64,000 bases of DNA, taken from Macrostomum lignano. Its lineage: Eukaryota. A program made the translations under genes and the position numbers. Below, piece by piece: positions 1-58,334 of this stretch. Numbering within the stretch: the stretch's first letter is position 1; the number at the start of each line of letters is the position of its first letter. The stretch lies in NCBI GenBank assembly GCA_002269645.1, contig NIVC01003207.1:62001-126000 (forward strand). Direction: 5' to 3'. The notes beneath the pieces are model-generated. The model was given only the letters and a program-made list of their open reading frames with translations, made no database searches and was not told the origin of the DNA.

Positions 1-1
1 T

Positions 2-6503: not shown

Positions 6504-7389
6504 ATGAAACATATTGGCATTCTAGTCATTTCTGCATGGTTAGTTAGCACCAACGCTGGAGTCGCAGGCAATGACCCCGGCAGCTGCGCCAACCAGAAGA
6601 TGTTCTCTTTAGCCCAGCCCCACAGCCTGACGGTTCCGCAGTCCTTCAAGTCCGTGCAGGCAATTGGCAGCGAGCTGCAGTGCTCTCTGCAGTGCAGAGC
6701 CCAGTCCGGTGTCTGCTTCGGCTTCTACTGGCAAGAGGCGAGTCTGTCGTGCCAGCTGTTCAGCATCGCTGCGTTCTTCAGCAAGTCGCTGTGGCAGCCG
6801 AACGACAAGCCGGTCGACGTCTTCGCGAAGCCGTTCGACTGTGAGTTTTACACGGAACCGTTTGTTAAATATGCGCGTTAGAGAACAATAGGGATGCAGT
6901 AAACAATCTGCAATCCAGGGATTAACTACAGTCTATTGTCTCTTTGATTTCGCAGTTTTTGCTGTTTCAGCGTCAGCAGAATCCATCCTGACTGTTCAAC
7001 GCTGCAGTCAGATCTCTACTTCCTGGAGCGCACCCTGCGGTCTAGCAATCGATGGTAACACGGATCAGAACTTTTACGGAGGCTCCTGCACCCACACCGG
7101 CGGAGGCGACTTCCAGTGGTGGCAGGCCGACCTCGCTCAGCAGTCCCGCATCACGGCAGTCCGCATCTTCAACAGACAGGACTGCTGCGCTCAGAGGCTC
7201 AACAACTTCACCCTGCTGGTTGACGATATCGAGTGCGCCAGGGTGGACGTAGCTCAGAGCTTCTCCATCAAGACGGTCAGCTGCCTCGGCTACGGTAGTC
7301 GGGTTCGCCTCGTCAGTCGCTTGCGTGATGTGGTGTTCAGCCTGTGCGAAGTTGAGGTTCTCGGCTTCACCGTCTCTGCGCTGCCTTAG
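6504..7389 (+). CDS. Secreted PAN/Apple + F-type lectin, copy 1 (exons 6504-6840 and 6971-7389; alternative in-frame acceptor at 6956; 251-256 aa)
   Basis: Signal peptide MKHIGILVISAWLVSTNAG. PAN-type Cys pattern (SELQCSLQCRAQSGVCFGFYWQEASLSC). Phase-1 GTGAGT..CAG intron. Second exon carries the canonical fucose-binding motif H-x26-R-x-D-x4-R (H...RQDCCAQR) and ends in an intact stop. Confidence 0.9.
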
Positions 7390-9276
7390 GCTATTAATTA
7401 AGCCTAATTAATAATTAATTAATTAATTAATTTTCGAGATGATGCACTAGCAATATGGAAAATATCAAGTTCTTTATTCGTCTCGAGCTCATTTCTAAGA
7501 AAATCTGAGCGTAGCGTTCTTCAACTTCAGTTGTCTAGTAAAAAATTCTGTTCAACAGCTTGACAATATAGGAGAACGGAGAACCCTTTTCAACTCAAAT
7601 AAAGTTTTATATGCGTGTCCGAATAACCATGTCCGGTTTCAGTGTGTCCGTTTGACTGTGTGGCTTGAAGGTAAAATTTCATAAAAACTCGAAATAAACC
7701 AAAAACAATAGATAGCATAAAAGTCATATTTCTGCTTCTAACAAAAAGGACTAATGATCAAGTCAATTTATTAATCTGGGTTTTCTATCACTTATTTATA
7801 CAGCTGAAGATGTTTTTATTCATCAATCGATCAATCATTCGATTTATCGATCACTCAGCTTAAAGCTTTGAGAAGCGTTGTACGGAGACGCGGAGAACGA
7901 ACGTTTTTTAGATTTCTGGGTGGGGGGAATCTGTAATGACTCGAGAACGAAGTCTTGATTCGCTATGCACTGGGAATTGGCTCCCGAGTGGCAGACAGGA
8001 ATAAGAGATGTAAACCAAACCGTATCGTCTAGCTTCGCCATATATTTGCGGGCTCCTGGGCCCCAACATAGCCAGGCGCGCTGTGGCACGATGCATGGAA
8101 CACGCGTACGAATGGTGCATACGTAGCATGGGGGAAGTGTTCAGAAGGGGTGACTCCGGTGAGTCAGTGAGGGGAACAAACAGAGTGCAAACAAACATAG
8201 TCAGTGGGAGCGGCAGACCATATGGCCAGGGCTGCGGAGCGATTCCCAGCCCAGGCCATCACAGAATCGACCAGGCTAGAAAACAGGTAACTGCAAGAAG
8301 ATACTATACAATGAAAGTCTATTTTTTAGTTTTTCAGCTGCCTGCTTTCTCAGGTGTTTCAGCTTCCAGTTTCAGTTTCAGCTTCAGGTGTTTCAGCTGT
8401 TTCAACTTTCTCAGGTGTCGGTAAACAACCAATTATTATCAGCTAGTTTGAGTAGCCAAATTGCAGCTCATTCCATTATCTTCATCAACTGGCACCAGTT
8501 AAAACAGCATAGCAACACTTCTAGGGGAAAATTGTTGCATTTCTGGTGCAGAAGCACTGTTTAACGACTTTAGACGCAATGGAAAACCAGGGAGAGCCAG
8601 TACTACACTGTGGATTTCATACAAAATATTGACTCTAATTGAGTGCGTTGCAATCTGTGCACTCTTGTTTGCTAACCTATAATTGCTTTGCTCGCCATCT
8701 TATTGACAATAAGTTGTGTAAGCTAGACTGTTGTAATTAAAGTTTGTTATTGGTATTTTAGAAATTTGCTTATTACTGCGGAAAAGCAAAATGAATAGAG
8801 AAGAGACATGATCGAACCATAAGCTAGTGGGTCAGATTGCTATTGTGAAGTTCGAAAGGGTCGGTTTGCCGACCCCTGCCCTACTGTCTGCCTTGATAAC
8901 GACGGTGTTAGGGTTACAGACCTCCGTGCGGCTTCGGGATCTCTTCCAGGAGGATTTGGACACGTTTTAAAAAACTGTGGACTCTGGCCCCAGCGATCGC
9001 AGGGTACAGCATCGCATGTAGTATATCTACCACTTATGACTGTGAGTTCTAAGAAACAGATAAGAACACAATTGACACTAACAATCAGAGGAAGTTATAA
9101 AGGTGACTTAATTCGAAGAAGAAGAAGTAAAACGCATAATTGAGAGGATTCATATTGAGGTCCAGTCAGAGCCCATTGCAATGACTGTCATCTTGTTGTG
9201 CTCAAGGTGTGCAGTGGTCCACAAACGGTCCTCATCTCGCAAGGAACAGCTACATCCAATAGAGATTCCTGAAAGC

Positions 9277-9278
<2 letters not shown>

Positions 9279-9314
<36 letters not shown>
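9279..9314. repeat. (AG)n microsatellite
   Basis: About 18 perfect AG units. Confidence 0.95.
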
Positions 9315-9316
<2 letters not shown>

Positions 9317-9906: not shown

Positions 9907-11044
9907 CTAAGGCAGCGCAGAGACGGTGAAGCCGAGCAGCTCAACTTCGCACAGGCTGAACACCCAACCAGGCAAGCGACTGACGAGGCGAACCCGACTG
10001 CCGTAGCCGAGGCAGCTGACCGTCTTGATGGAGAAGCTCGGATCCGCGTCCACCCTGGCGCACTCGATATCGTCAACCAGCAGGGTGAAGTTGTTGAGCC
10101 TCTGAGCGCAGCAGTCCTGCCTGTTGAAGATGCGGACTGCCGTGATGCGGGACTGCTGAGCGAGGTCGGCCTGCCACCAATGGAAAACGCCTCCTTCGGT
10201 GTGGGTGCAGGAGCCTCCGTGAAAGTTCTGATTCGTGTTGCCATCGATTGCTCGACCACAGGCTGCGCTCCCGTGAGTAGAGATCTGACTGCAGCGTTGA
10301 ACAGTCAGGATGGCTTCTGCTGACGCTGCAACAGAGACATTGGGCGGAATAAGTGCGAGTTTTGATGAGAAACTCCAGTTGTACTTTTATGTCCTTTTAT
10401 GCTTCGCTCGGGTTGGGATGGGGCTTGCTTAGAAATTTGTCGCGGAAAATTTACGGTGATTCAACAAGGCGGGACAGGAGCTCTGTGGGACGGACCCATG
10501 GGACTTGCGGTTTTGGACTGGGAGCACCTGGGGTAGCTCTCACACACGTACGTTGCGATCAGGCTGGAGTTATGAAAATTCAAAACTGCTTCTGTCGGTA
10601 CTGCAGCAACCAAAGCGAAGGACAGATATTTGAATATGAGCTTGGAATCTCTGTGATTACAGGCCAAAATATTTCCCTTAAATCATCTATGCCATTGCAT
10701 TCAAACTCACAGTCGAACGGCTTCGCGAAGACGTCGACCGGCTTGTCGTTCGGCTGCCACAGCGACTTGCTGAAGAACGCAGCGATGCTGAACAGCTGGC
10801 ACGACAGACTTGCCTCTTGCCAGTAGAAGCCGAAGCAGACACCGGACTGGGCCCGGCACTGCAGAGAGCACTGCAGCTCGCTGCCAACTGCCTGCACGGA
10901 CTTGAAGGACTGCGGCACCGTCAGGCTGTGGGGCAGGACTAAAGAGAACAGCTTCTGGTTGGCGCAGCTGCCGGGGTCATCGCCTGTGACTGTCGAGCAG
11001 GTTGTCGCCAGCAGAGCGAATGCGGCTGTGAGGAGCCTCAGCAT
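9907..11044 (-). CDS. Secreted PAN/Apple + F-type lectin, copy 2 (exons 11044-10711 and 10325-9907; 250 aa)
   Basis: MLRLLTAAFALLATTCS signal, same PAN exon, phase-1 intron GTGAGT...TTGCAG. The lectin exon is open with H-x26-RQDCCAQR. The two exon lengths sum to a multiple of 3. Confidence 0.9.
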
Positions 11045-11656: not shown

Positions 11657-11775
11657 GACAGGTAGACACAAAGTTAGAGAAAACAGAATAAACCAGACAG
11701 ACATTGAAGACAGGTAGACACAAAGTTACAGAAAACAGAATAAACCAGACAGACATTGAAGACAGGTAGACAGAC
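11657..11775. repeat. 52-bp tandem duplication (about 2.2 copies)
   Basis: gacaggtagacacaaagtt... starts at 11657, 11709 and 11761. Confidence 0.85.
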
Positions 11776-12744
11776 AGACAGCAGTCATTATAGATAAGCC
11801 AATAAACTGACTGACACATGCATACAAGGATGCATACAAGGATATGTTTGACCGACTGAGTCACAAGAGCACTAAATAGTGTCCAGAAGCCATCCAAGCA
11901 CAAAATAATAAAGAAAGAAATTGATGCTGAAACACGAATTACGCATCAAGTCAGCTTTATCGCACACCTCAAAACTGTATGCATGCAACACATTTTCGGC
12001 ATAAGTACACGAATTGCTTCAATTTTTTTCACAAAAGAATCATTAAAATGAATTGATCTACATGTAATTTTTATTTAACGTACTACGCACGATCACACAG
12101 GGTGCACAGAGGCCCTGACTGTCTAATCGTCAGGCATGTGCACTCTCTGTGACATGGGGACTGGAGCCCTCCTGGCTGTGAATCGCATCTGGCCAAGTTT
12201 CGTGCTCTCGGAAAATCAAAACGAAGTCTGCAATGCGGCTACCGGAAAAATTAATTGGGCTGTTTTTCTAAGATAAAATTTCAAATAAAATCAAATTGAA
12301 GCATCTTATTAAAACCATGGCCTGGCAGGATTGAGTCTCATATCAGTAATTATAATTTATCAGATACACACGCACTTTGCATGCATTATTAACATTAAAA
12401 TTGTGTAATAAAAATAGAGCAAGTAATTTTTTTATCAATCTAACATTAATCCAAAACACGTTAATGGAACAAGATGATTCTTCAAGGTAATTTTATTAGG
12501 ACTGTAAATATGCTGTCAATGTAATATTGCTCTGCAGGAAGATTCGGCATAATTATTATAATTATAATTTTGAACAGCAACAAGAGCTACAATATGGGGA
12601 GGATAAATCAGCTAGATGCAACAGAGAACACTGATATAAAGTATATTTACGTTGGCACCATCTAGCAACACCAACGAGTTTACAGCAGCAATTTTTACAC
12701 GAACTTTGTGTATTGGTGGTGACTGTTTCCATTGGATTAGGGCT

Positions 12745-13265
12745 TTGGGGTGGCGGGCGCAGTGGGGTGACGGGTGCAGGTGGGGTGGTGGACGCATTGG
12801 GGGGTCGGCGCAGTGGGGTAAGCGGGCGCAGTGGGGTGGTGGGTGCAGTGGGGTGGTGGGTGCAGTGGGTGGCGGGTGCAGTGGGGTGGTGGGTGCAGTG
12901 GGGTGGCGGGTGCAGTGGGGTGGTGGACGCAGTGGAGGGTCGGCGCAGTGGGGTAAGCGGGCGCAGTGGGGTGGTGGGTGCAGTGGGGTGGCGGGTGCAG
13001 TGGGGTGGCGGGTGCAGTGGGGTGGTGGGCGCAGTGGGGGGTCGGCGCAGTGGGGTAAGCGGGCGCAGTGGGGTGGTGGGTGCAGTGGGGTGGTGGGTGC
13101 AGTGGGGTGGCGGGTGCAGTGGAGTGGCGGGTGCAGTGGTGGTGGGTGCAGTGGGGTGGTGGGCGCAGTGGGTGGAGGGTACAGTGGGGAGGCGGGTGCA
13201 GTGGGGAGGCGGGTGCAGTGCGGTGGCGGGTGCAGTGGGGTGGTGGGCGCAGTGGGGTGGTGGGT
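12745..13265. repeat. G-rich minisatellite (GCAGTGGGGTGGTGGGT-like, ~17-20 bp units)
   Basis: Dense GGG/GGGG runs on the + strand; produces the Pro/His and Gly/Val artefact ORFs. Confidence 0.95.
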
Positions 13266-13578
13266 ACATTATGGCGACCAATCAATAATGTTATGTTAAA
13301 TTATAAAGCAAGAAAAACGGTCAGACATAAGACCGAAATTAAAAGAAACAAAGCCGTGGAAAATCATCAATTTAGCTCGTAAATTAGGGCAGCAACAGTA
13401 CTCTAGCTAACTTGTCAAACGAGACGCCAAAACTAATGACAGTATAAATAAAACTAACAAACAAGCATGCAATAGTATTATATAAAAGCGGCACCCTGAA
13501 AGTCGAGCATCAATATTATATTTACTATTAAATGATTAGTAAATTCGCTGATACGAGAATTTCACAATCGCAAATCAC

Positions 13579-16572
13579 TCAAGCCAAATAGTGCGAGAAG
13601 AACTCATAGGAGGCGGTCACCACGCCCCAGGATAGCATCGAACGGAAGCAATTTGGCAAGGCGCCTCGGTAGATCTGGCGCACACTGCGACCCCGACTAA
13701 TGTACTCTAATCGAAGGCAGGTGACAAACGAAGTGTACGGACCGCCTACAGTCTTCTGCATATGAGTTTTAGCCACATTGAACGGATAGTTAAACGTGGA
13801 CAGCAGAGCGCCTAGCAGGGCTCCGTTAGTGAAATCTCGAACTGGTCCCGGCATGCCCGTGGCCCGCCTCTCCATGTGGGCTTTGAGCAGGAAATATAGT
13901 ACACTGCTGAATCCATTACGATAGAGAATTGGGGTCAGGCCTCTGTACCATTCTGTCAGGCCATGCTGGCGATACAGCTGACCAAATGCGTGAAAAGTGT
14001 TCCTGCGCGATAGTGTGCAATAAGATTGCAAATAGTGAGAGAAGTTTTCAAATTAAATCAAAGTCAATCAAAGACTGTTAATCAATTTTTGTTTGCGCCA
14101 CCAGTGTCTTGTACAAGTGTGCCACAGGTGTCTCATACAGGTGTGCAAAACGGTGTCCCATACAAGCGTGCCACAGGTGTGCAACACAGGTGTCTCATAC
14201 AGGTGCGCACCACAGGTGTCTCATACAGGTGTGCACAACAGGTGTCCCATACAAGTGTGTCACAGGTGTCTCATACAGGTGTGCAAAACAGGTGTCCCAT
14301 ACAAGTGTGTCACAGGTGTCTCATACAGGTGTGCCACAGGTGTTTCATACAGGTGTGCAAAACAGGTGTCCCATACAAGTGTGTCACAGGTGTCTCATAC
14401 AGGTGTGCCACAGGTGTTTCATACAGGTGTGCAAAACAGGTATCCCATACAAGTGCGCCACAGGTGTCTCAAACAGGTGAGCACCACAGGTGTGCAACAG
14501 GTGAGCACCACAGGTGTGCAACAGGTGTCTAAAACAGGTGAGCACCACAGGTGTGCCACAGGTGTCTCGTACAAGTGCACCACAGGTGTGCAACAGGTAA
14601 GCACCACAGGTGTGCAACAGGTGAGCACCACAGGTGTGCAACAGGTGTCTAAATCAGGTGAGCACCACAGGTGTGCCACAGGTGTCTCGTACAAGTGCAC
14701 CACAGGTGTGCAACAGGTGAGCACCACAGGTGTGCAACAGGTGAGCACCACAGGTGTGCAACAGGTGTCTAAAACAGGTGAGCACCACAGGTGTGCCACA
14801 GGTGTCTAAAACAGGTGAGCACCACAGGTGTGCCACAGGTGTCTCGTACAAGTGCACCACAGGTGTGTTATACAGGTGTGCAACACAGATGGGCCAAAGG
14901 TGTCTCATAGGTACCACGGGTGTCTCATAAATACCACAGGTGTCTCATATAGATACCACAGGTGTCTCGTATAGGTACCACAGGTGTCTCATATAGGCAC
15001 CACAGGTGTCTCATATAGGTACCACGGGTGTCTCATAAATACCACAGGTGTCTCATATAGGTACCACGGGTGTCTCATAAATACCACAGGTGTCTCATAT
15101 AGGTACCACAGGTGTCTCATATAGGTACCACGGGTGTCTCATAAATACCACAGGTGTCTCATTTAGGTACCACAGGTGTTTCATAGGTACCACAGGTGTC
15201 TTAAAGGTACCACAGGTGTCTCATATAGGTACCACAGGTGTCTCATAGGTACCACAGGTGTCTTAAAGGTACCACAGGTGTCTCATAGGTACCACGGGTG
15301 TCTCATAAATACCACAGGTGTCTCATATAGATACCACAGGTGTCTCGTATAGGTACCACAGGTGTCTCATATAGATACCACAGGTGTCTCATATAAGCAC
15401 CACAGGTGTCTCATAGGTACCACAGGTGTTTCATAGGCACCACAGGTGTCTCATACAGGTACACAAATCTCACTGGCTAGGGGTTGGTCACTGCCGCAGC
15501 TTAATGCGACAGGCCCAGCAGCGCACCTGTAAGTAGCCTGATACCGTTGATCCTGCAGCAGCGTCTGCACCCGTTCCAGCGGCATCAGCGAAGCTTCGCA
15601 GCTTCCCGCCATAAAAGCCGCCAAAGCGCTGCACACTTCGGCATTCCATCTCGGCGCTAATAAAGTCAATTCGGTGGAGAACTTTGCGTAGCAACCGAAT
15701 AGCAGACTCAGGTTGCAGATTCGCTGCAGCAGAGGTGGCAGCACGCCTCTGAGCGGAGGTGGGGGTGGTGCATGCGATTAATTGAAGGAGTGGAAACTGG
15801 AAACTGGGGGCAGAATACTGGAAATGGGGGCGGAATACTAGAAATGTGGGCGGAATACTGGAAATGGGGGGCGGAATACTGGAAATGGGAGCGGAATACT
15901 GGAAATGGGAGCGGAATACTGGAAATGGGGGGCGGAAAACTGGACATGGGGCGGAATACTGGAAATAAGGGAGCGAAAAACTGGAAATGGGGCGGAATAC
16001 TGGAAATGGGGCGGAATACTGGAAATGGGGGGCGGAATACTGGAAATGGGGGGCGGAATACTGGAAATGGGGGGCGGAATACTAGAAATGGGGGGCGGAA
16101 TACTGGAAATGGGGGGGCGGAATACTGGAAATGGGGGGCGGAAAACTGGAAATGGAGCGGAATACTGGAAATGGGTGGCGGAATACTGGAAATGGAGGGC
16201 GGAATATTGGAAATGAGGGGGCGGAATACTGGAAATGGGGGCGGAATACTGGAAAGGGGGGCGGAATACTGGAAATGAGGGGGCGGAATACTGGAAATGG
16301 GGGGCGGAAAAGTGAAGCAGTAACAGAAAAGTTCTCAAAATAAATACTCACCTATAGAGCGACAGAAACTCTTTCCTAATAACTTGATCTGCTGCATTTC
16401 TAAACGATATATTCCATAACTGCTGTCTAAAAATGATTTTATGCAATGGAAAGCCAACGATGACATTAGTTACGCCAGACAGACCGCCAGCTACAAACTC
16501 AAGCCTGGCTTTGTGATGGTTCTGACCGCCTGCGGTGGCTGCGCCGGCTGGTATCGCATTAGTAGACACCAT
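13579..16572 (-). CDS. SLC25A51: Mitochondrial carrier, SLC25A51/MCART1 orthologue (mitochondrial NAD+ transporter family); exons 16572-16352, 15748-15527, 14002-13579; 288 aa
   Basis: Three carrier repeats (FPLHKIIFRQQL, MPLERVQTLLQD, YPFNVAKTHMQ) and C-terminal RSMLSWGVVTASYEFF match the human SLC25A51 pattern. GT-AG introns with consistent phase 2/2. Confidence 0.9.
14100..15462. repeat. Compound CACAGGTGT-core minisatellite filling SLC25A51 intron 2
   Basis: Two sub-arrays: cacaggtgtctcatacaggtgtg-type to ~14890, then taccacaggtgtctcatatagg-type. Confidence 0.95.
15797..16310. repeat. ~20-21-bp minisatellite (GGCGGAATACTGGAAATGGG)n in SLC25A51 intron 1
   Basis: About 25 units with a variable G-run. 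Confidence 0.95.
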
Positions 16573-16785
16573 TTATTGTTATTATTGTTGTTATTTATTA
16601 AACGTTTATGGCCGATTTGAAATAAAGAAACTGGACTCATATAGGTTAGCAGGGCAGTTGGATCACTGCATGCCTCTGCTACCTTGTTAGCTTTGCTACT
16701 GGCGCCCGCATGCAATAGTGAGAAAAAACATTTCTATTGAAGTTTAAACATTATCTAGATTAGCTATAGTGAAAGTACGTTTCCT

Positions 16786-17445
16786 AGAAGCTAATTCCTA
16801 GAATCGCTAAGCTAATTCCTAGAATCGCTAAGCTAATTCCTAGAATCACTAAGCTAATTCCTAGAATCGCTAAGCTAATTCCTAGAATCGCTAAGCTAAT
16901 TCCTAGAATCGCTAAGCTAATTCCTAGAATCGTTAAACTAATTCCTAGAATCACCAAGTTAATTCCTAGAATCGTTAAGCTAATTCCTAGAATCGCTAAG
17001 CTAATTCCTAGAATCGCTAAGCCAATTCCTAGAATCGCCAAACTAATTCCTAGAATCGCTAAACTAATTCCTAGAATCGCTAAACTAATTCCTAGAATCG
17101 CTAAGCTAATTCCTAGAATCGCTAAGCTAATTCCTCGAATTTCTAAGCTAATTCCTAGAATCGCTAAACTAATTCCTAGAATCGCTAAACTAATTCCTAT
17201 AATCGCTAAGCTAATTCCTAGAATCGCTAAGCTAATTCCTCGAATTTCTAAGCTAATTCCTAGAATCGCTAAACTAATTCCTAGAATCGCTAAACTAATT
17301 CCTATAATCGCTAAGCTAATTCCTAGAATCACCAAGGTAATTCCTAGAATCGCCAAGCTAATTCCTAGAATCGCTGAGCTAATTCCCAGAATCGTTAAAC
17401 TAATTCCTAGAATCGCTAAGCTAATTCCTAGAATCTTAGAATTCC
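16786..17445. repeat. 21-bp minisatellite (AATTCCTAGAATCGCTAAGCT)n upstream of SLC25A51
   Basis: About 31 units; source of the ILGISLA artefact ORF. Confidence 0.95.
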
Positions 17446-18891
17446 TAGAAATTGATCACTGTTCAAATGGACAAGTAAACAAATCAGATGCACTCTACAT
17501 ACTACTTAGTTGAATTTGGGAATAGCAGAAGGCTTCAACTGCTATTGGTATGTACAATGCACAGAGTCAGCCTAAAAAAGCAAGAGCAAGGTCTCCGTTG
17601 TGTTTTAAAACACTCAAGTGAAAAGCAAAACAAACAATTTGATGCAGACAACAAAAATAAACAAAAACAGAGACCCAATGAGAATGCCACCGTTAATCTT
17701 GAATAATGATTACGACATATAAATATCGGTGCAGTTAAGACTTACACGCAAACACAAATACACAAAACTTGCAAAAAATTGATCATGCAAAGCAAACAGG
17801 GAAAATACGGTACACTAAAAACTAAAAATAAGAAATTGGGAGATCAAAGTAGGCATGAATGGACCGAGAAAATGCATTGTGACAAAGTATATATATATAC
17901 AGTACGATTATACATATCGATATAACCGAACGCAATATGAACAGAGGCTGGTAAACGCGGTTTACCAAAAAGCAAACGAATTTAAACAATTGTATGCACA
18001 GTTGATTTAAACAAACAAACTTGACAAACCTACGCGCACATTAAATGTGCCAACTATAATAAGCTGATTCTAATTTTAAATTAAAAATAAATATTTTATT
18101 TCGCATGCGCCATTTACTTTTAACAAAGAAAAACTACTACTTACTGTCATGAGTAGTGCAGTCGAATTTGCATGTCGGAATATGAAGTGAATTAATTATT
18201 AATCTGAAATAAAATAATAGAAATAGACATACAAAATTAGCAAAACAAACATTTTCAATTGTTAAAACAAAATCACAATACAAATAGATAGAAATCAATC
18301 CTTTCTGTGAGGTCAAAGTTAACTGACGAAAATAATATTGATTTTAAAGTACATCAGCTACTTTGATAATTAATAAATCGATCAAATGGCACACCATCAC
18401 CAGGCGACTGAGAATTGCAAATTGGCATTGATTTTTTTTAAAAACAAACAAAATTTTAAAAAGATGAGCACACTGAATATCAAAATTGTAAATCAGGCAG
18501 ATTAACAAAATAAACAAAAATCAAAGATATATTTAACCGGAATAAATGAGAATTAAAGTAAACAATGCATAGAAAAATAAACACTTAGACCAAAAATATT
18601 CTGGAGTAAACTGTTATTATAACAAAATATCATTCAAGCGATGGAAGAGAAGTTTGGGAAAATTAATTAATGGGCTCTTAGCACTTGGTGTTTCATTTAA
18701 ATTTATTATGTAATATCGAAAATTAAGTGCTTCAAATTCCGTATAGGAATACTAAATTAAAAGTATTCTAATATTATTGAAAATATTACAAAGTACGCAA
18801 ATGGGGAAATGAGCAATCTACACTGAATAAACTCGGAAATGATCGCAATTAAACATTTACACGAGGGGTTTCCAGACTGTTTTACTCTGTG

Positions 18892-20100
18892 ATTGCTGGG
18901 CCAGCCTCCCAGATCCTCAGTTGCTGGGCCAGCTTTCCAGATCATCAGTTGCTGGGCCAGCCTCCCAGACTGTCAGTTGCTGGGCCAGCTTTCCAGATCA
19001 TCAGTTGCTAGGCCAGCCTCCCAGATCTCCTGTTGCTGGGCCAGCCTCCCAGATCATCAGTTGCTGGGCCAGCCTCCCAGAGTGTCAGTTGCTGGGCCAG
19101 CTTCCCAGATCATCAGTTGCTAGGCCAGCCTCCCAGATCTCCTGTTGCTGGGCCAGCCTCCCAGATCCTCAGTTGCTGGGCCAGCCTCCCAGATCATCAG
19201 TTGCTAGGCCAGCCTCCCAGATTCCGTTGCTAGGCCAGCCTCCCAGATCATCAGTTGCTGGGCCAGCCTCCCAGAGTGTCAGTTGCTGGGCCAGCTTCCC
19301 AGATCATCAGTTGCTAGGCCAGCCTCCCAGATCTCCTGTTGCTGGGCCAGCCTCCCAGATCCTCAGTTGCTGGGCCAGCCTCCCAGATCATCAGTTGCTG
19401 GGCCAGCTTTCCAGATCATCAGTTGCTAGGCCAGCCTCCCAGATCTCCTGTTGCTGGGCCAGCCTCCCAGATCATCAGTTGCTGGGCCAGCCTCCCAGAG
19501 TGTCAGTTGCTGGGCCAGCTTCCCAGATCATCAGTTGCTAGGCCAGCCTCCCAGATCTCCTGTTGCTGGGCCAGCCTCCCAGATCCTCAGTTGCTGGGCC
19601 AGCCTCCCAGATCCTCAGTTGCTGGGCCAGCCTCCCAGATCATCAGTTGCTAGGCCAGCCTCCCAGATTCCGTTGCTAGGCCAGCCTCCCAGATCTCCTG
19701 TTGCTGGACCAGCCTCCCAGATCCCCAGTTGCTAGGCCAGCCTCCCAGATCTCCTGTTGCTGGGCCAGCCTCCCAGATCTTCAGTTGCTGGGCCAGCCTC
19801 CCAGATCATCAGTTGCTAGGCCAGCCTCCCAGATTCCGTTGCTAGGCCAGCCTCCCAGATCTCCTGTTGCTGGGCCAGCCTCCCAGATCTTCAGTTGCTG
19901 GGCCAGCCTCCCAGATCCTCAGTTGCTGGGCCAGCCTCCCAGATTCCCAGTTTCTGGGTCAGCCTCCCAGATCCTCAGTTGCTGGGCCAGCCTCCCAGAT
20001 TCCCAGTTTCTGGGTCAGCCTCCCAGATCCTCATTTGCTGGGCCAGCCTCCCAGATTCCCAGTTTCTGGGTCAGCCTCCCAGATCCTCAGTTGCTGGACC
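18892..20100. repeat. 27-28-bp minisatellite (CAGTTGCTGGGCCAGCCTCCCAGATCAT)n downstream of MEN1
   Basis: About 43 units with recurring higher-order variant order. Confidence 0.95.
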
Positions 20101-20300
20101 GGCCTGAACAATCAAAATGATTTATCAGGTCACTACAGTTTGCAGTTTTATCATTCAACAGATCAGCTGGCAAATGAGTCATGACAGTAAACACAGTCAG
20201 GAAACGTTTGCAACAACCCACTCATATTTTGTAAGCGATTTCAGATTAATATATGAAGCGAACCAATCAATGTTTAGTGTCTTTTCTGTTTTCTTCAGCT

Positions 20301-23300: not shown

Positions 23301-24634
23301 TGGTGATCGCAGCTGACCAGAGTGTAGAGAGTCTGGCAGTGCGCCAGCTCCGCTAGGCCGACGCAGTGCCTCAGGCGGGCCCAGACTCGGTCAGCCAGCT
23401 GCACAATCACGTGACGCAGCAAATCCGGGAACCAGGCAGCAGCGGGCAGGTGAATTTCCAGCAGGTCTACGCTGGACCAGTTTAGCTTTTTTAAACGGGA
23501 GCACAGAGCTGCGGAGTCCGTGTTGTTGTTGTTATTGTTGCTTAGCAGCACCAGCTCCTGGGGAGGGGACATGGGATTGAGGTGTAGATTTGGGTTTGAT
23601 ACAAAGCCAGTCAGACAGACAGACAGACACACAGAGAGACTGACAGACAGACAGACAGACACAGACAGACACAGAACACAGACAGACACAGACAGACACA
23701 GACAGACAGACACAGACAGACACAGACAGACAGACTGACAGACAGACAGACAGACAGACACACAGACAGACAGACACAGACAGACAGACACAGACAGACA
23801 GACAGACACACAGAGAGACAGACAGACAGACAGACAGACACAGACAGACACAGACAGACAGACACAGACAGACACAGACAGACAGACTGACTGACAGACA
23901 GACAGACAGACAGACACACAGACAGACAGACACAGACAGACAGACACAGACAGACAGACAGACACACAGAGAGACAGACAGACAGACAAACAGACACACA
24001 GACAGACAGACACAGACAGACAGACACAGACAGACAGACAGACACAGACAGAAAGACAGACACACAGACAGACAGATAGACAGACACAGACAGACACAGA
24101 CACACAGACAGACAGATAGACAGACACACAGACAGACACACACACAGACAGACAGACAGACAGACACAGACACACAGACAGACAGATAGACAGACACACA
24201 GACAGACACACACACAGTCAGACAGACAGACACAGACAGACACTCACCTGCTCAATCCTAGTCCTATATTTGGTCAGATCAAATCTCATAGCATACACAT
24301 CCTGGCAGAAGCTGTTACACAATTTATCCAGCTGGTCCAAGTTCAGATTTGGAAATGCCACAATCTGATCATCGGTGCCTGCAGCGGCAGCGGCCACAGC
24401 GGCAGGTGCCGTAGTCAGCTGACTCTCAATATCGCCGAGCAGAATTGACAGCTGAGCAAGACACGGCTCAGTTTCCCTACGCAGCACGCAGCCAATTAGC
24501 GCTAGAACATCTTCCGCGGAAGACAGTCTGGCAGGAAGTCGGTATCGTTTCAACAGCTTGGCAAAGCTGATGGGTCCGACGCTTCCGGTGCCACTTAACA
24601 ACGGCAAACAGGTGGTTGCCGACATGCGATGCAT
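20301..24634 (-). CDS. MEN1: Menin; exons 24634-24248, 23557-22914, 22239-21843, 20999-20301; about 708 aa
   Basis: Menin-specific motifs [93 protein letters not shown] and [16 protein letters not shown]. Splice phases 0/2/0 are consistent. Confidence 0.92.
21110..21800. repeat. 30-bp minisatellite (AAAATGAGGATTTCAGGGTGAAAAATCCCC)n in MEN1 intron 3
   Basis: About 22 units. Confidence 0.95.
22267..22800. repeat. 21-bp pyrimidine-rich minisatellite (CCTGTCTTCCTCATCTCCTCA)n in MEN1 intron 2
   Basis: About 24 units, decaying toward 22800. Confidence 0.95.
23611..24242. repeat. (CAGA/CA)n compound microsatellite filling MEN1 intron 1
   Basis: Begins immediately after the GTGAGT donor on the sense strand. 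Confidence 0.95.
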
Positions 24635-24929
24635 GCAGCATAATGGATTATAATGATTTATTACTGCTTACAGATGATCAATTCATATCAACAGAAATTT
24701 ATTTTGCCTATATTTAAAAGAAAAAAATGGATATTGGCGGAAAAACTTAAAAAAGACATTTGGTAGAGTAATAGAGTACTTGGATAGGTTTAAGGACCAC
24801 GATTCAGGTATTAAGGAACAAATCAGGAGACCTAGACCCTAATACCTGAATACCTAATACCTGATATTAACTCAACTTAATCGATATGAAGTTAAGTTAA
24901 TATCGATTAGGGCACCAAATTAGTAGCTA

Positions 24930-31043: not shown

Positions 31044-31142
31044 CGCTTTTGGTTATTGTTCTATATTTCTACCTGAAGAGATTAGGACATAAATGAATTA
31101 TTTTTACAACTGAAACTTACTCAGCCTATCTGAATCTTGATT

Positions 31143-45006: not shown

Positions 45007-48000
45007 TGTGACGTTGTCAGTTTAAGGTGGTCCCGAAAAGGGCCGTTGGACTGCTGTTTCTCCATAGTTTCAACCCTTCAGTTTCACCGTTCCAACTAAA
45101 CTTTTCCATTTGTTTATTGCGACGTTTACTTGTAGTAGTGCCCAACGATTTTGTGGCAATTTCTAATTCACTGTATATTTTACTATCCTCTCTCGCGACC
45201 GTTTAAAATTGGCACGATCGATAATTTCAAGTTCTCTCGCCAGCCAATGAAAACTCTCCGTGTTTTACGCTCCCCCCTCTGCGCTCCTTTATTAAACCCC
45301 CCGCCTGGCGGCAGGCACTCCTCACTCCCTGCTCGTCCCTGTTCTTGTGTTCTGTGTTCTCTCTCCTTAGGCTTGCCTCCGTCCCGTCTGGCTTGCCTAG
45401 CCTTGTCTAGCCTTGTTTTCCTTCTCTCTGTCTGGCTGCCTCGAGCCTCCTTACCTCACGCCACGGCTGACGCCAACCTCGCCACTGCTCATCTGCCTAC
45501 CTACTACGTCTCACTGCCTTCACTGTACTCATTGCCATTGATCATCACGTTACGTCGCCATTATATCACTCGTCTGTCGCTTGAACTCACATCCAATTTA
45601 TTGTCTTGTAACCGTGACAAACGGAGTGGTCTAAGATCTGACCTCATCAATATCAACGTCTGTGTATTGTACATTCACGCCAAAAAGGCAATAAGCGCAC
45701 AGGATACAGGGAACATGAAGAAAACGGCAGGTAGACGGCGCACAATACCGTAGGGGAGGATGGAAAAAGGGAAGGACAGCCGGCAAAAAGGACGACAAAA
45801 GCAGACGGAGGAAAAGCAGCAATCAAACAAAGAGAGAAACAGAGAATCCAGAAAAAGCAAAAAGTAGTACATTAGAACGGCCCAGAGCCCGTCGCAGACA
45901 GGATAGGCAAAAGCAATACCAAAAGTTGAGAAGGCAAAGAAGAAGACAGCAGGAAGAAGGAAAGGAAAAGCAGACGACAGACACGCGCCACCCCCCCCCC
46001 CGGCTGCCACCCGGGGGACCAACGCACACCACACGAAGTCACAGCTACAGTCCGTCCGGTTTTCTGGCCAAAACCGGCAAACCCGTACAAGCACCAAAGG
46101 AGACGGGCCAAGTCGGCGAGGCGCGAGGCCACCCGTCATAAGGGCGTAGTGCCAGACCACGACAAGCAGTGGAGATTGTGATTAAAGTTAACCATAATAA
46201 CATATAAGTAGCATAGTTAGTAAATTAATAAGTTAGTTAAACTTCCTACATCCAAGTTAAGACATAAGTAGCATATAAAGTAAGTAGTCATCAAAGATAA
46301 ATATGGCCTAATTGGAAAGAATTAACCAAAGAAATCTATTTGGACCCACACCCCCCACACACCTTTGGAAAGATTTCAAGAGCTGCCATACCTCCCCGTC
46401 CTTCTATGGAAAGCCTCCGCCTCATAAACCCCTCCCTCAAGTACCATGATCGACAACAGTTTCTGTTCGGCTTTAGTGAAACCTAAATTAGTTAAAATTT
46501 GCGATGTTCTCTTCTCCATGCATCCTCTCCAATTCCAGATAAGCCCAGAGCATTTAAATCCTGGTTTTTCTAACGACTTAAGGTTATAGTAATTAAGGAC
46601 CCAATCTTTGATGCATGGTTTGTTATAATAGCTACATTTATTATCGGCAGCTCTTTCCATACTTCCTGGTCCCACTCCCGCATCTGCAACAATTGAGACG
46701 TCCCCAATCCAGGCGGTGTTGCCCATCTTCCAAATCAGGTCTGGCCTACGACCTCCTTCTTTCGTAGAAATAAGCTGTTCTTTGATAGGTTGATGAGCTC
46801 TAGTTTCTAATTTGGCAAAAATATAGTTAACAATCTTATGGTGCCTGAAGTTACGTTTGTCGAATGTACGATTACAGCTTTGTAAGATGTGCCCCAAACC
46901 TTCAGCTCTACGACAGCCCGCATCGCAATTCGGAGCTTTGCCCCGACCTCTGGATGCACGGGCCCTGGTAGGCCAAAGATTGGATCTTATTTTGAGGCAC
47001 TTAATACACATTTCTGATGAGACTATGCTTGTGCCGTCGGAGACCCAGTCATGAACGAAAGGGACCTCGGCGGCTTCAGCAAGGCCTCTGCCATCCATCG
47101 TGTTGTTGAGCCTCTCTTTCCAATGGAGGTTAATTTCATTCATACTGTTATAAACTATTAAAGATTTGTCAAGTTTAAATTTATTGGCGAATTTAGGTTG
47201 ATTAGCGATCTTCTTAATTAGAGAGTCACTACAGTTAATAAGGCTTTGAAGTTTCCTGTTCTTAAAGTAAGGAATACATGTAGTAAATGAACTAATACCC
47301 AGGCCTCCATCGCGTACCCTCGCATGAATTATAGGCGACGGAGTATCCTTGGGTAACCTGAGTATATTGATAACCCATTTTCTGACCGTAATGTCTGCTT
47401 CTAATAATGTCTTTTTGTGGATTCTACCGTTAGTAAGAAGATAATTAACTTTAGGTATGACATTAGTGGAAAGTAGGTACATGCGTTGCTGAGGCCTAAG
47501 AGGGGCCTCCTTAAGTTTGGCAAGCATGTCCTTTAAGACCTTCAATCCCGGCTGCACTTGCCCTTTGGCATTGATCTCAATTCCCAAATATTTATAGCTA
47601 TTTTGAAGGCCTATATTAGGTAGTTCTTGGTTGTAAATTTTAAATCTAATGCTTTGGTTATTAAGCCACCTCTTGTTCTTCCCATCCCAAACGATCGCGA
47701 TGGTAGCACTCTTCTTGATATTGACTTCGAGGCCAGTTGGAGCAAGGGCCTCTTCAAAGGTACTGAGATGTTTAGTAAGTCCGGCTTCACTCGATGCGCA
47801 GATAGCCATATCGTCCGCAAATGCTGCAGAGTTGACTCTCTCCTGAGCAATTGGGAAGGCTAGGTGCGGGTCGAGTGAGCCCAGGACCTCATCTATTACA
47901 AAATTAAAAAGGATAGGTGACAAAGGGTCACCTTGCTTGACCCCCCTCCCAAGATTAGTAGTATTCCCAAAGATTTCAGTAGTATTGTTGGTGTATAAGT

Positions 48001-49725: not shown

Positions 49726-50996
49726 CTAAGGCAGCGCAGAGGCGGTAAAGCCGAGAACCTCAACTTCGCACAGGCTGACGTAAGTGTTCAGCCGATTGAT
49801 GAGGCGAACCCGACTGCCGTAGCCGAGGCAGCTGACCGTCTTGATGGAGAAGCTCTGAGCTACGTCCACCCTGGCGCACTCGATATCGTCAACCAGCAGG
49901 GTGAAGCTGTTGAGCCTCTCAGCGCAGCAGTCCTGCCTGTTGAAGATGCGGACTGCCGTGATGCGGGACTGCTGAGCGAGGTCGGCCTGCCACCACTGGA
50001 AGTCGCCTCCGTCGGTGTGGGTGCAGGAGCCTCCGTAAAAGTTTTGATTCTTGTTACCGTCGATCGCTAGACCGCAGAAATATTGTCCAAGAGTGGAGAT
50101 CTGGCTGCAGTTTCGAATGGTCAGAACGGATTCCGTTGGCGCTGCAAGAGTCAATAAACTCTCAAATTTAGAAATAATTTGTAGAACTGCATTAATGAGT
50201 GCCCTGATTGGCAGTAAAATATGGAATATTTTTCAGTCAATAATCCTGTCACACAGCCTTTCAGCCTGTTTAGAGGCAATGATGTGCAACTTGCAAGCGA
50301 TGGAAATAAAGAAGCCTGGTTATTCTTCCCGCAGCAGTTAATCTGCAAATCCAGTAGTCCCCACGCCTAGTGATGTGTTACACTTTTATAAGTATGGTAT
50401 GATAAGTATTCGTAAGTGTGGGTGCAGGAGCCTTCGTGAAAGTTCTGATCCGTGTTACCATCGATTGCTTGACCGCAGACTGCGCTCTGGTAAGTAGAGA
50501 TCTGACTGCAGTTTCGGACAGTCAAAAAGGCTTCTGTTGGCTCTAAAGCTACCAAAGCGAAGGGCAGACATTGAAATAACAGTTTTGAATCTCAGCACTT
50601 ATAACCAAAAATTCCTCCTTAACATTATTTATGTCATTGAATTCATTCAGTGTGGAACTCACAGTCGAAAGACTTCGTGAAGACGTCGACCGGCTTGTCG
50701 CTCGGCTGCCACAGCGACTTGCTGAAGAACGCAGCGATGCTGAACAGCTGGCACGACAGACTCGCCTCTTGCCAGTAGAAGCCGAAGCAGACACCGGACT
50801 GGGCTCTGCACTGCAGAGAGCACTGCAGCTCGCTGCCAACTTCCTGCACGGACTTGAAGGACTGCGGCACCGTCAGGCTGTGGGGCTGGGCTAAAGAGAA
50901 CAGCGTCTGGTTGGCGCAGCTGCCGGGGTCATTGCCTGCGACTTTCGAGGAGGTTGTCGCCAGCAGAGCGAATGCCAGTTGAAGGAGACGTTGCAT
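49726..50996 (-). CDS. Secreted PAN/Apple + F-type lectin, copy 3 (exons 50996-50663 and 50141-49726; 249 aa)
   Basis: Signal peptide, PAN exon and phase-1 intron. Lectin exon open with H-x26-RQDCCAER. A truncated extra lectin exon lies at 50548-50367 inside the intron. Confidence 0.9.
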
Positions 50997-51599
50997 TTTT
51001 TGGTTTTGGTTGGGTATTAACGGCCTGAAGCTCTAGCTTAACCTCACAGATGAAAACAAGACATGGGCTTAGCCTGCTGCTTTAGCAGTTTATAATAAAT
51101 TTGAGTGGATACGATGCTAAATATCCCTTCCCCACAGATAATGCAACATTTTGCAATGCACATCTGCGCTTAATTTACGGGATTTAAGGCTATTGGGATA
51201 ATTCTCGTTGCTGTGTAGTTGATGGTGGGGGGGCAGTGAGAGATGAGGGTATTGCTTTGGGCTGCGCCGCATAGCTACGTAATGATGGGCAGCAGAGGCT
51301 GTAAAAGTTGCGATCCTTTTCCCCTAAGGCAGCTCACAATCTCTCAACGGAGCAGCTCTCAGGACAATTGCAAAGGCTTGCTTCCAAATAGACAGGCCAG
51401 AATTAGTGTTAGAAAATTTAATCATCATATTGCATTGTATAAATAGTCCACTGTCACGCATTTTTATGGCATTGGATGCGTTTAAGTCGACTTGGATATT
51501 TGCTGTAGGCTTTGGGTTGCTGACCATTCTTCCAATCCTTTCGACTGAGGAAGCTGTCAGGAGCGGCCAGGGGGAAGGCATGAGCGGGGCCGCAGTCCC

Positions 51600-55559: not shown

Positions 55560-56610
55560 CGATGGACTGCAAACCCCCCTCTCTCATCCTCAGGAAGGGC
55601 TTCAAATGTACCCTTCCGCCGCGAGGGTGCCACCCATTGGACGTGGGCATCAACCGGAGAAGCCAGGGCATTCACTGCTTCACTGACGGATCCCTGTGTG
55701 ACGGCCTAGCGGGCGCGGGCATTGCCATTTTCCACAAGGGTGAGACGATCTTTCAAGAGAGTCTTCATCTTGGTGAAAATGTCTCGGTTTTACAATCCGA
55801 AGTTATGGCTATCAACCAGTGCGCTGAGCATTTGCACAAAGCTGGCATCAGCAGCTTTGACATAAATTTTTACTCTGACAGCCAGGCTGCTATTAAAGCC
55901 TTGTCTTCCATCAAGCTCTCAACCAAGTCAGTTTCAGACAGCTTCAAAAGCTTGCAGACCCTGGCGATTCTCAACAGGATCAATGTTATCTGGATACCAG
56001 GCCACAGCAATATCCTCGGAATTGAGCCTGTGGATCAACTCACCTAACGGGGTAGCACCCCGGGTGGAGCGCAACGCTCGGTCAAGTTACCTTCTCCGAA
56101 GTCATCAGTCAACCGCGCCATTCAAGAGTGGCTGAACCACTAGCACCAGATCCACTGGAAGTATCCGAATATCTAATCTCCTTAAGCAAAACTGACCTCA
56201 GGGAGATGTGCATGGTCATTACTGGCCATGGCTTCTCCCAGAGACATATTTTACTGCAAAGTGGTTGCTCCCCTATCTGCCCATTCCGTGATTTAGAGGA
56301 GGAAACCTCGACGCACCACGTCACTTTCTGCCTGCACTTCAACGAGGCGCGGAGACGTCACCTCGGTCACCCGCTAAGGCTGGACGAGCTCACCACTCCG
56401 GACCGGATCCGTGACCTGCGCGCATTCGTTCGGGATTCTGGACGGATGAAGATCGCAGACGCCACTCTCGCGAGCTCTTCTGCTGCCGACGAGGGGTGGG
56501 CGCAGCCCCAAGGCTAACGCCTTCCTGTTTTTAGCTTGGCCGGGTTGTGATAGGGGCCTCGCGGCCTAATCGCGGCGTTCGGCCCCCTTCGTCGGTAGTA
56601 ATTAAGCAAT
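55560..56610 (+). mobile_element. 5'-truncated LINE (I/R1/LOA group): RNase HI domain and C-terminal zinc finger, pseudogenised
   Basis: [37 protein letters not shown] and [12 protein letters not shown], then ITGHGF...[18 protein letters not shown]. Stops and frameshift present. Confidence 0.82.
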
Positions 56611-57062
56611 CTACATGGAACAAATATGGTTTTAGGCAGCCGCCCTTCACAAATATGACGGCATTATATGCAGTTCATAGACGCCACGTAGCTTGTACTT
56701 GACAACAAGAAAAATTTTGTAACTCCCTTAAATGCATTAGCAAGAAGGCGCGAAAAAAAATTAACAACAAAGTTAATTGCAGTTTAAAATGTGAATTGGT
56801 GTTTTTACTTATAATATAAAGTCTTCACCATTCTGTGGTCTTCACCATTGACTTCACGCTCACCGTTAAGCACAACAAAGCTTATAGCCAACGAATATAC
56901 TGGCTCGTAGTTAATTTTAGAAAAACAAAATTAAAGATTCTTGGAAAAGTTTTAGTTATATTCAGACTTTAAACACATGACACGTTACTTTCGGAATCTC
57001 ATTCTGAATCGCTTCAACTTGTGTGTATTTGTGACACCGAAGAAGCTCCTTAGGTCGGTCCT

Positions 57063-58334
57063 TTAAGGCAGCGCAGAGACGGTGAAGCCGAGAACCTCAA
57101 CTTCGCACAGGCTGAACACAAGACCATGCAAGCGACTGACGAGGCGAACCCGACTGCCGTAGCCGACGCAGCTGACCGTCTTGATGGAGAAGCTCGGATC
57201 TGCGTCCACGCTGGCGCACTCGACATCGTCAACCAGCAGGGTGAAGTTGTTGAGCCTCTCAGCGCAGCAGTCCAGCCTATTAAAGATGCGGACTGCCGTG
57301 ATGCGGGACTGCTGAGCGAGGTCGGCCTGCCACCAATGGAAGTCGCCTTCGTTGGTGTGGGTGCAGGAGTCATGAGAAAAATGCTGATTTTTGTTACCGT
57401 CGATCGCTAGACCGCAGAAATATTGTCCAAGAGTGGAGATCTGGCTGCAGTTTCGAATGGTCAGAACGGATTCCGTTGGCGCTGCAAGAGTCAATAAACT
57501 CTCAAATTTAGGCATAATTTGTAGAACTGCATTAATGAGTGCCCTGATTGGCAGTAAAATATGGAATATTTTTCAGTCAATAATCCTGTCACACAGCCTT
57601 TCAGCCTGTTTAGAGGCAATGATGTGCAACTTGCAAGCGGATGGAAATAAAGAAGTCTGGTTATTCTTCCCACAGTTAATCTGCAAATCCAGTGGTCCTC
57701 ACGCCTAGTGATGTGTTACACTTTTATAAGTATGGTATGATAAGTATTCGTAAGTGTGGGTGCAGGAGCCTTCGTGAAAGTTCTGATCCGTGTTACCATC
57801 GATTGCTTGACCGCAGACTGCGCTCTGGTAAGTAGAGATCTGACTGCAGTTTCGGACAGTCAAAAAGGCTTCTGTTAGCTTTAAAGCTACCAAAGCGAAG
57901 GGCAGACATTGAAATAACAGTTTTGAATCTCAGCATTTATAACCTAAAATTCCTCCTTAACATTATTTATGTCATTGAATTCATTCAGTGTGAAACTCAC
58001 AGTCGAAAGACTTCGTGAAGACGTCGACCGGCTTGTCGCTCGGCTGCCACAGCGAATTGCTGAAGAACGCAGCGATGCTGAACAGCTGGCACGACAGACT
58101 CGCCTCTTGCCAGTAGAAGCCGAAGCAGACACCGGACTGGGCCCTGCACTGCAGAGAGCACTGCAGCTCGCTGCCAACTGCCTGCACGGACTTGAAGGAC
58201 TGCGGCACCGTCAGGCTGTGGGGCTGGGCTAAAGAGAACAGCTTCTGGTTGGCGCAGCTGCCAGGGTCATTGCCTGAGACTGTCGAGCAGGTTGTCGCCA
58301 ACAGAGCGAGTGCCAGTTGAAGCAGATGTTGCAT
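57063..58334 (-). CDS. Secreted PAN/Apple + F-type lectin, copy 4 (exons 58334-58001 and 57481-57063; 250 aa)
   Basis: Same structure as copy 3, with motif H-x26-RLDCCAER. A truncated extra lectin exon lies at 57886-57705. Confidence 0.9.

Follow-up and report, generated by a model that had tools for sequence, protein, structure and literature searches.

A lectin locus of the flatworm Macrostomum lignano with a homogenised scaffold and reassorted loop islands: probable exon-limited gene conversion among F-type lectin paralogues

Introduction

F-type lectins are textbook recognition proteins with loops likened to complementarity-determining regions (CDRs). The eel fucolectins (Anguilla anguilla agglutinin, AAA, PDB 1K12, and eFL-1 to eFL-7 of A. 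japonica) consist of a single F-type lectin domain with a His/Arg/Arg triad, a Cys-Cys disulfide and a calcium site, and isoforms within one animal differ mainly in CDR1 and CDR2 (PMC5712786). A gene-conversion mechanism was not found reported for them in the accessible parts of the eel literature. In the oyster Crassostrea gigas, bindin is encoded by a single-copy gene whose F-lectin domains are diversified around the sugar face by recombination in a mid-domain intron, with splicing that varies the number of repeats and positive selection at eight sites; a retroelement lies beside the repeats. To our knowledge, the origin of F-type lectin isoform diversity is known in detail only for oyster bindin. 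Here we describe a family of secreted F-type lectins in a 64-kb stretch of DNA, referred to as the window, from the flatworm Macrostomum lignano (assembly GCA_002269645.1, contig NIVC01003207.1, positions 62,001 to 126,000 of the forward strand).

Beyond F-type lectins, concerted evolution with islands of divergence is a general model, with cases of the major histocompatibility complex, immunoglobulin V and opsin/RH type. In the FREPs of the snail Biomphalaria and in chicken immunoglobulins, recognition-receptor diversity is ascribed to gene conversion, partly from non-functional donors, in systems claimed or known to act somatically with large donor pools. Our literature search returned no paper on Macrostomum fucolectins, and none on gene conversion among F-type lectin paralogues.

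We find that the coding exons of this family are homogenised within DNA that has otherwise diverged beyond alignment, that the lectin exons are mosaics of one another, and that differences between copies are concentrated in a few loops. The family is old and dispersed, and the most probable account of it, which we hold with reasonable though not complete confidence, is ectopic (interlocus), exon-limited gene conversion in which loop islands are reassorted on a constant scaffold. Both scaffold homogenisation and loop reassortment can be read from a single 64-kb stretch.

Homogenised exons in diverged DNA

Searches with copy 1 (tblastn and blastn) find four complete genes in the window that encode a PAN/apple-like domain followed by an F-type lectin domain, plus extra pieces. 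These copies 1 to 4 are called c1 to c4, a fifth gene to the left of the window c0, and the lectin exon (exon 2) is numbered from nt 1. Each of the four has an ATG, a hydrophobic N-terminus, a first exon of 334-337 nt and a second exon of 416-419 nt ending in a stop codon; with GT..AG introns in phase 1, all are intact, as an earlier reading of the same DNA from sequence alone (the sequence-only reading) had supposed. The neighbouring genes c1 and c2 converge, c3 and c4 lie in tandem 7.3 kb apart, and c1 and c3 are separated by 43 kb on opposite strands.

Along one gene, synonymous divergence (dS) changes by a factor of more than 10. In the same gene pairs, the signal peptide has a dS of 0.25-2.2, the mature PAN part one of 0.035-0.07 and most of the lectin exon one of 0.08-0.17; the first 31 lectin codons (93 nt) stand apart, with 0.64-1.0 when the c1/c2 lineage is compared with the c3/c4 lineage. 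Any two copies differ at just 5-12 of the 271 nt of the mature PAN part, so the near-identity of the PAN exons claimed earlier holds at the nucleotide level. The longest stretch without a single difference among the four copies is 53 nt in the lectin exon; in the PAN exon it is 44 nt. Outside the exons, the upstream, intron and downstream DNA of c1, c2 and c3/c4, compared by global alignment score against shuffled sequences, scores like shuffled sequence (z ~0), whereas the exons are 86-97% identical; a weak match between the c2 and c3 introns is the only exception. Homology found by blastn ends within ~10 nt of the exon borders. Since introns and flanks are saturated between lineages, the duplicates are old, and changes of dS as abrupt as these along a gene cannot be produced by selection at the protein level, whereas repeated exon-limited exchange can produce them.

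The GC content at third codon positions (GC3) is 0.75-0.78 in the lectin genes, 0.44-0.62 in neighbouring open reading frames (ORFs) and 0.41 in the unconverted signal-peptide part of c1, a pattern that fits GC-biased conversion without proving it.

The 5' end of c1 deserves separate mention. Its signal-peptide part (6504-6560) and 5' flank show no relation to their counterparts in c2-c4 (differences at 27-33 of 66 nt), and in the signal-peptide part the GC3 of c2-c4 is 0.55-0.68, above the value for c1. The sharp boundary to the homogenised PAN part implies that c1 has a different 5' end or promoter.

Mosaic structure of the lectin exon

Within the lectin exon the copies are related in conflicting ways. 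Over nt 1-91, c3 and c4 are identical; further on, c1 at 7206-7295 is identical over 90 nt to c3 at 49906..49817, a stretch with 6 differing sites in c4 and 4 in c2. Both identities had been noticed in the sequence-only reading and are exact. Around the second, c1 and c3 differ at 5 of 243 nt (nt 99-341), against 30 of 98 nt upstream and 15 of 25 nt downstream. Permutation of the 82 polymorphic sites gives p < 5e-5 for the longest concordant c3-c4 run, of 32 polymorphic sites, and p = 0.002 for the c1-c3 run, and maximum chi-square breakpoints are significant in five of the six pairs (p <= 0.002). Quartets taken segment by segment support (c1,c2)|(c3,c4) in nt 1-91, with within-pair differences of 0 and 8 against 28-30, and (c1,c3)|(c2,c4) in nt 272-290, the VAQ/ADP patch, while the remaining segments are star-like. 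Trees therefore conflict between adjacent segments instead of agreeing along the exon, and the non-tree-like pattern from which exchange between paralogues had been proposed is real.

The clearest case is c3, whose lectin exon is a three-part mosaic: c4-like in nt 1-98, c1-like in nt 99-341, and in the last loop (~49800..49777) similar to psiA, a pseudogene cut by the window edge, after which the sequence is common to the copies. The c3 loop, NRLNTYVS, is one codon short through a 3-nt deletion that it has in common with psiA. The psiA loop, DNQLNTYLN, belongs to the same 9-codon 'NTY' type as that of c3 and has the same length; 21 of 27 nt are identical, including AACACTTAC, while c3 differs from c1, c2 and c4 at 14-15 of 28 nt. 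Of 11 variants private to c3, 6 are found in psiA. The c4-like beginning belongs to a tract of ~1.17 kb in which c3 and c4 are ~97% identical, with flanks of 50-85% identity; the tract ends inside the lectin exon.

Unequal crossing-over, with the creation of chimeric genes, is an unlikely source of these junctions. The tandem position of c3 and c4 would suit it, and truncated lectin exons in the c3 and c4 introns, together with a remnant in c2, indicate that at least one illegitimate or unequal recombination rebuilt the gene at the CTHT codons in an old rearrangement. However, c1 and c3 are inverted with the menin, CCR4-like and mitochondrial carrier genes between them, so that a single crossover would invert the region and not move a 243-nt patch, and the patches are internal and flanked on either side by sequence of other ancestry. 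Given the inverted arrangement and the 43 kb between c1 and c3, the internal patch must have been copied, and the other ancestry kept on both sides of the c1-like tract in c3 is what would be expected for conversion. We infer that the mechanism is conversion rather than a double crossover.

Identical stretches could also have been made during assembly or polishing, if reads of one paralogue corrected another or if haplotypes were mis-joined. The genome is recently duplicated and repeat-rich (PMC7053086), the UniRef models P0004 and P0002 carry indel-type errors, and the window matches UniRef models of the same assembly exactly (P0022 equals c2 and P0003 equals c4, and the fused models P0020 and P0023 reproduce the local gene order), which leaves no truly independent copy. 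Yet the c3/c4 tract spans 1.1 kb of intron and promoter at ~97% and not 100% identity, with sharp old flanks; the c1-like tract of c3 retains 5 private differences; the combination found in c3 (KNQNFYGG in a shifted frame, THTDGGDFQ, VAQS, NTYVS) recurs in P0004, on another contig; and the heterogeneity of dS affects the PAN exon of all four genes too. That an artefact created the c3-c1 and c3-c4 identities appears distinctly improbable.

Loop variation and its position on the domain

Differences between the copies cluster in five short patches. In the order c1/c2/c3/c4 they read SWSAP/HGSAA/LGQYF/LGQYF after CSQIST, TDQNFYGG/TNQNFHGG/KNQNFYGG/KNQHFSHD after AIDGN, GGGDFQ/EGGVFH/DGGDFQ/NEGDFH after CTHT, VAQS/ADPS/VAQS/ADPS in a mid loop and SRLRDVVFS/SRLPGWVFS/NRLNTYVS/SRLHGLVFS in the last loop, all exactly as quoted earlier. 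The sequence-only reading had equated them with the CDR-like loops of eel agglutinin. Alignment to AAA supports this for the patch after CSQIST (CDR1), the patch after AIDGN (CDR2, the Phe45/Tyr46 region) and the patch after CTHT (CDR3, following His52); for the other two it holds only as far as model topology allows. Because a literature search for a CDR5 definition in F-type lectins found none, the VAQ/ADP and last loops were placed by strand order and parity in an AlphaFold2 (AF2) model, which suggests that they lie at the same barrel end as the CDRs. Their strand parity agrees with the known calcium ligands Cys146/Glu147 and the Asp64-Arg131 salt bridge of AAA.

Variation is concentrated in these loops and not evenly spread. 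The 46 loop residues account for 22 of the 40 variable ones (Fisher p 1e-3; 5e-5 when the first 13 residues are left out). At the nucleotide level, each of the six pairs shows an excess of differences in the binding-face loops (binomial p 3e-5 to 3e-8), in keeping with the clustering described earlier. Silent sites take part in this: dS is 0.17-0.70 in the binding-face loops against 0.04-0.07 elsewhere. Loop dN/dS (the ratio of nonsynonymous to synonymous divergence) ranges from 0.35 to 1.02 and for c1-c2 is ~1 in the loops against 0.2 elsewhere, these ratios being pairwise, as the sequences are too few for site models, which recombination would bias in any case.

If the copies were recent duplicates whose loops had diverged fast, by positive selection or local hypermutation and with no exchange at all, strong clustering of differences in the loops and a c1-c2 ratio near 1 would be expected. 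This explanation is already contradicted by the data, and we find it barely credible: introns and flanks are saturated between lineages, which makes the duplicates old; in the loops, dS is raised no less than dN; and identical multi-nucleotide cassettes (VAQ/ADP, and NTY with its deletion) occur in conflicting combinations, with four-gamete incompatibility. Positive selection as the main cause of loop divergence was likewise rejected, dS being raised as much as dN. Because loop dS is raised along with dN, the loops would be old divergent sequence and not hypermutated. Judged from their silent sites, they look like old islands that escape homogenisation or are moved as blocks, and a special diversifying mechanism is not supported. 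The cassette shuffling proposed by the sequence-only reading thus stands in so far as DNA has been exchanged between paralogues; a dedicated diversifying mechanism is not supported, as homogenisation dominates and loop dS is high. The recognition role suggested there, whether immune, mucus/adhesive or gametic, is conjectural.

Pseudogenes, relic exons and further family members

No fewer than five genes at the locus are intact; pseudogene fragments and relic exons accompany them, and the genome contains additional copies at other places. The fifth intact gene, c0 (P0001), was recognised from the fused UniRef model P0020, which places it immediately left of the window. The sequence-only reading had mentioned neither this gene nor the pseudogene fragments and relic exons. 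Besides psiA, the window holds a second fragment, psiB, which carries the otherwise private Val codon of c4 (TGC GTC GGC) together with the Ile codon of c3. The introns of c3 and c4 contain the relic exons r3 and r4, which correspond to the 5' third of the lectin exon; their CDR1, YQSAV, is a third type, closest to YLSAG of P0001. Spliced to exon 1, r3 would give a stop codon at the junction.

Family members beyond the window were compared as proteins only. On another contig, P0021 joins a c1-like lectin to a c0-like PAN end, and P0002, also on another contig, is c2-like with c4/c0 states at several sites; the C-terminus of P0024 adds further combinations. Where the second-locus models depart from c2 (P0002) and from c1 (P0021), they mostly take the state of another paralogue. 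Across 8 protein-level members there are 5 variants of CDR1, 7 of CDR2, 7 of CDR3, 3 of the mid-loop and 6 of the last loop, with 8 incompatible character pairs.

Dead copies alongside intact ones raise the idea of a programmed, possibly somatic, system that copies loop cassettes from pseudogenes or relic exons into expressed genes, in the style of chicken antibodies or snail FREPs. Several features are of the kind that such a system would have: psiA has a loop cassette in common with c3, psiB carries variants otherwise private to c3 and c4, the genes harbour silent relic exons, and FREP diversity has been ascribed to gene conversion and point mutation (PMC12074976). Yet psiA differs from c3 at 6 of 27 nt of the patch and hence did not act as a donor in recent times; the relic exons, which are no better conserved than the intron around them, have left no trace of transfer in c3/c4; and the family is small. 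At private sites, r3 and r4 match c3/c4 once against 9 mismatches, and they were rejected as donors. We consider a programmed system extremely improbable. A related reading, which we think unlikely, is a germline cassette library in which the framework would provide homology arms and loop patches for expressed genes would be drawn from a reservoir of dead copies, namely psiA, psiB, the relic exons and others elsewhere, with copying possibly frequent enough to differ between individuals or cells. If this were true, a flatworm would possess a template-driven means, comparable to antibodies, of varying its glycan recognition.

Probable exon-limited conversion and comparison with known systems

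Exon-limited ectopic conversion, the explanation that we favour, would work as follows. Identical framework stretches would serve as homology for ectopic strand exchange, and conversion would repeatedly overwrite the exons, so that the scaffold stays near-identical even at silent sites while introns and flanks diverge beyond alignment. Five loop patches (CDR1, CDR2, CDR3, VAQ/ADP and the last loop) would persist as divergent islands, carried between copies within tracts, and tracts with ends in or around loops would bring these islands into new combinations. Divergent loops are plausibly protected from loss by selection for distinct glycan specificities; we infer both that selection maintains the differences between loops and that glycan specificity is tuned by the loops. 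Every gene would end up with a loop set of its own on a constant scaffold whose fucose triad is intact. The dominant signal is scaffold homogenisation, that is, concerted evolution, and not the generation of novelty.

Several points weigh against this explanation. All sequences come from a single assembly, which appears to be the one that yielded the exact-match UniRef models P0003, P0022, P0023 and P0020, and short-read polishing of paralogues can create false homogenised stretches; the only semi-independent support for the c3 mosaic is P0004, an indel-ridden c3-like model on another contig. The high GC3 could equally be codon bias. The binding-face placement of the last two loops depends on strand parity in a predicted model and not on coordinates. 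Finally, four full sequences cannot resolve the direction or number of events, nor distinguish import of a patch from its escape from homogenisation.

The locus resembles cases of concerted evolution with selected divergent islands: most of the coding sequence is homogenised, ligand-contact regions are divergent and shuffled, dS is heterogeneous, and boundaries coincide with exon edges. It differs from the general cases in gene family and phylum, and in that pseudogene and relic-exon relatives are included here. Concerted evolution with reassorted ligand-contact islands would here be found in a lectin family and a phylum where it has not been described before. Like the eel fucolectins, the Macrostomum copies have a single F-type lectin domain with the His/Arg/Arg triad, Cys-Cys disulfide and calcium site, and vary in CDR1 and CDR2; the eel proteins lack a PAN-like N-terminal domain, whereas the Macrostomum copies add a Cys-bracketed CDR1 and two further variable loops. 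Nothing like the somatic action or the large donor pools of FREPs and chicken immunoglobulins is seen at this locus.

The parallel with oyster bindin drawn in the sequence-only reading is a loose one. In common are F-lectin domains diversified around the sugar face with recombination, and retroelements alongside, here as gag, reverse-transcriptase and RNase H ORFs. Bindin, however, depends on mid-domain intron recombination and splicing, while in Macrostomum separate paralogues each have one domain in one uninterrupted exon, exchange takes place within that exon, and dN/dS is at most 1. Neither an intron-split domain nor a domain number varied by splicing is found, the extra lectin exons being truncated and dead. 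The locus shows a diversification route other than that of bindin, through exchange between separate paralogues inside a single domain exon. Overall it is a clean, well-delimited and fairly ordinary example of recognition-gene family evolution, not a new principle. Because transgenesis, gene knockdown and in situ hybridisation are available in Macrostomum lignano (PMC7053086), the effect of the loops on glycan specificity, the site of expression and any ongoing conversion after the recent genome duplication are all testable.

Domain identity and predicted sugar site

Exon 2 encodes an F-type lectin domain by both sequence and fold. It matches Pfam F5_F8_type_C_2 and F5_F8_type_C; its best solved relatives in a PDB sequence search are striped-bass FBP32 and the eel agglutinin AAA; and the AF2 model of the domain, with a predicted local distance difference test score (pLDDT) of 87.6 and a predicted TM score (pTM) of 0.84, has as its top Foldseek matches only F-lectins (lectinolysin, SpX, 1k12 at TM 0.84, and 3cqo). 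For residue roles we follow PMC5712786, which defines the fucose motif as His followed by Arg-x-Asp-x4-Arg/Lys at AAA spacing; residue correspondence comes from direct alignment to AAA. The triad is intact in c1-c4 as CTH(41)T ... NR(68)xDCCAxR(75), matching His52, Arg79 and Arg86 of AAA residue for residue, and the adjacent Cys-Cys pair is kept in all four. The cation motif h2DGx (AIDGN) and the ligands S38, C125 and E126 are present, leaving the calcium site intact in all copies, and equivalents of the disulfides C50-C146 and C108-C124 can be aligned. The scaffold thus appears fucose-competent in all copies, and binding of fucose or fucosylated glycans is predicted.

Two extra cysteines (lectin residues 11 and 22; in c1, 7003-7005 and 7036-7038) bracket the hypervariable CDR1 in the pattern C-SQIST-xxxxx-C. 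The bracket is also present in the more distant relatives P0005, P0034 and P0156, and not in eel or bass F-lectins; it may make CDR1 a disulfide-stapled loop.

The assignment of exon 1 to the PAN domains is borderline. Its score against Pfam PAN_1 is 20.6 bits (E = 4e-4) where the gathering cut-off is 21.4, and UniRef labels the paralogues 'Apple domain-containing'. The cysteine pattern C-x3-C-x6-C-x11-C presumably fits PAN. In the AF2 model of the mature c4 protein, built on a shallow alignment, the PAN part (residues 1-92) has a pLDDT below 35, and a PDB sequence search with the PAN part gave no match. The PAN exon has five cysteines, an odd number.

The closest proteins to the family in UniRef are 'FTP domain-containing' and 'Apple domain-containing' proteins of Macrostomum lignano. 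Among the amphioxus, crinoid and Logan matches, Pfam recognised no protein that combines PAN with F-lectin. P0156 (214 aa, source unknown) has the same layout of signal, PAN-like and F-lectin parts at 43% identity, and P0034 combines WSC-like repeats with the same lectin subtype, which implies that the subfamily with the Cys-bracketed CDR1 extends beyond this locus.

The locus and its neighbours

Coordinates are collected in Table 1. Between the c1/c2 and c3/c4 pairs lie unrelated genes, for a mitochondrial carrier, menin and a CCR4-like protein with leucine-rich repeats (LRR) and a nuclease domain, with many intronic minisatellites, and retroelement ORFs (gag, reverse transcriptase, RNase H) adjoin the lectin copies.

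Table 1. Lectin-family features and neighbouring elements, by position in the 64-kb window
Feature	Position	Strand	Remarks
c1	exon 1 6504-6840, exon 2 6971-7389	+	251 aa; exon 2 encodes F-type lectin domain, with stop codon
c1 exon 1	6504..6840	+	signal peptide and PAN/apple-like domain; homology to other copies only from nt 57 (6560)
c2	exon 1 11044..10711, exon 2 10325..9907	-	250 aa; signal peptide and PAN-like exon, lectin exon
c2 intron	10326..10710	-	contains decayed remnant of lectin-exon start
c2 intron remnant	~10625..10560	-	decayed version of the extra lectin-exon start of r3/r4
c3	exon 1 50996..50663, exon 2 50141..49726	-	249 aa; signal peptide and PAN-like exon, lectin exon
c4	exon 1 58334..58001, exon 2 57481..57063	-	250 aa; signal peptide and PAN-like exon, lectin exon
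c1 tract in common with c3	7069..7311	+	counterpart in c3 50043..49801
c3/c4 tract, ~1.17 kb	c3 50051..51222, c4 57391-58560	-	promoter, exon 1, whole intron, first 91 nt of exon 2
psiA	1..181	+	3' part of lectin-exon pseudogene, cut by window edge; in-frame stop (..SYGT*VRL..); inside P0020
psiB	3988..4099	+	5'-truncated 3' lectin-exon fragment (..CVGYGSRVRLISRLRGVAFSLCEDEV..)
r3	50416..50550	-	dead truncated lectin exon in c3 intron; encodes PTEAFLTVRNCSQISTYQSAVCGQAIDGNTDQNFHEGSCTHT; homology stops after CTHT
r4	57754..57888	-	same dead truncated lectin exon in c4 intron; acceptor AG mutated to AA
Retroelement gag-like ORF	2607..3263	+	Pfam PNMA / Retrotrans_gag; between psiA and psiB; contained in P0020
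Reverse-transcriptase ORF	46376-47923	-	just downstream of c3
RNase H ORF	55562-56047	+	between c3 and c4
Mitochondrial carrier exons	13579-14031		
Menin	20301-24211		
CCR4-like LRR and nuclease gene	26041-31043		
Minisatellite arrays	12700-31700		many and long; periods ~23-170 bp; e.g. 18893-20105, 28819-30137

The UniRef model P0020 (861 aa) wrongly fuses c0, the psiA and psiB fragments, the gag ORF and c1 into a single protein.

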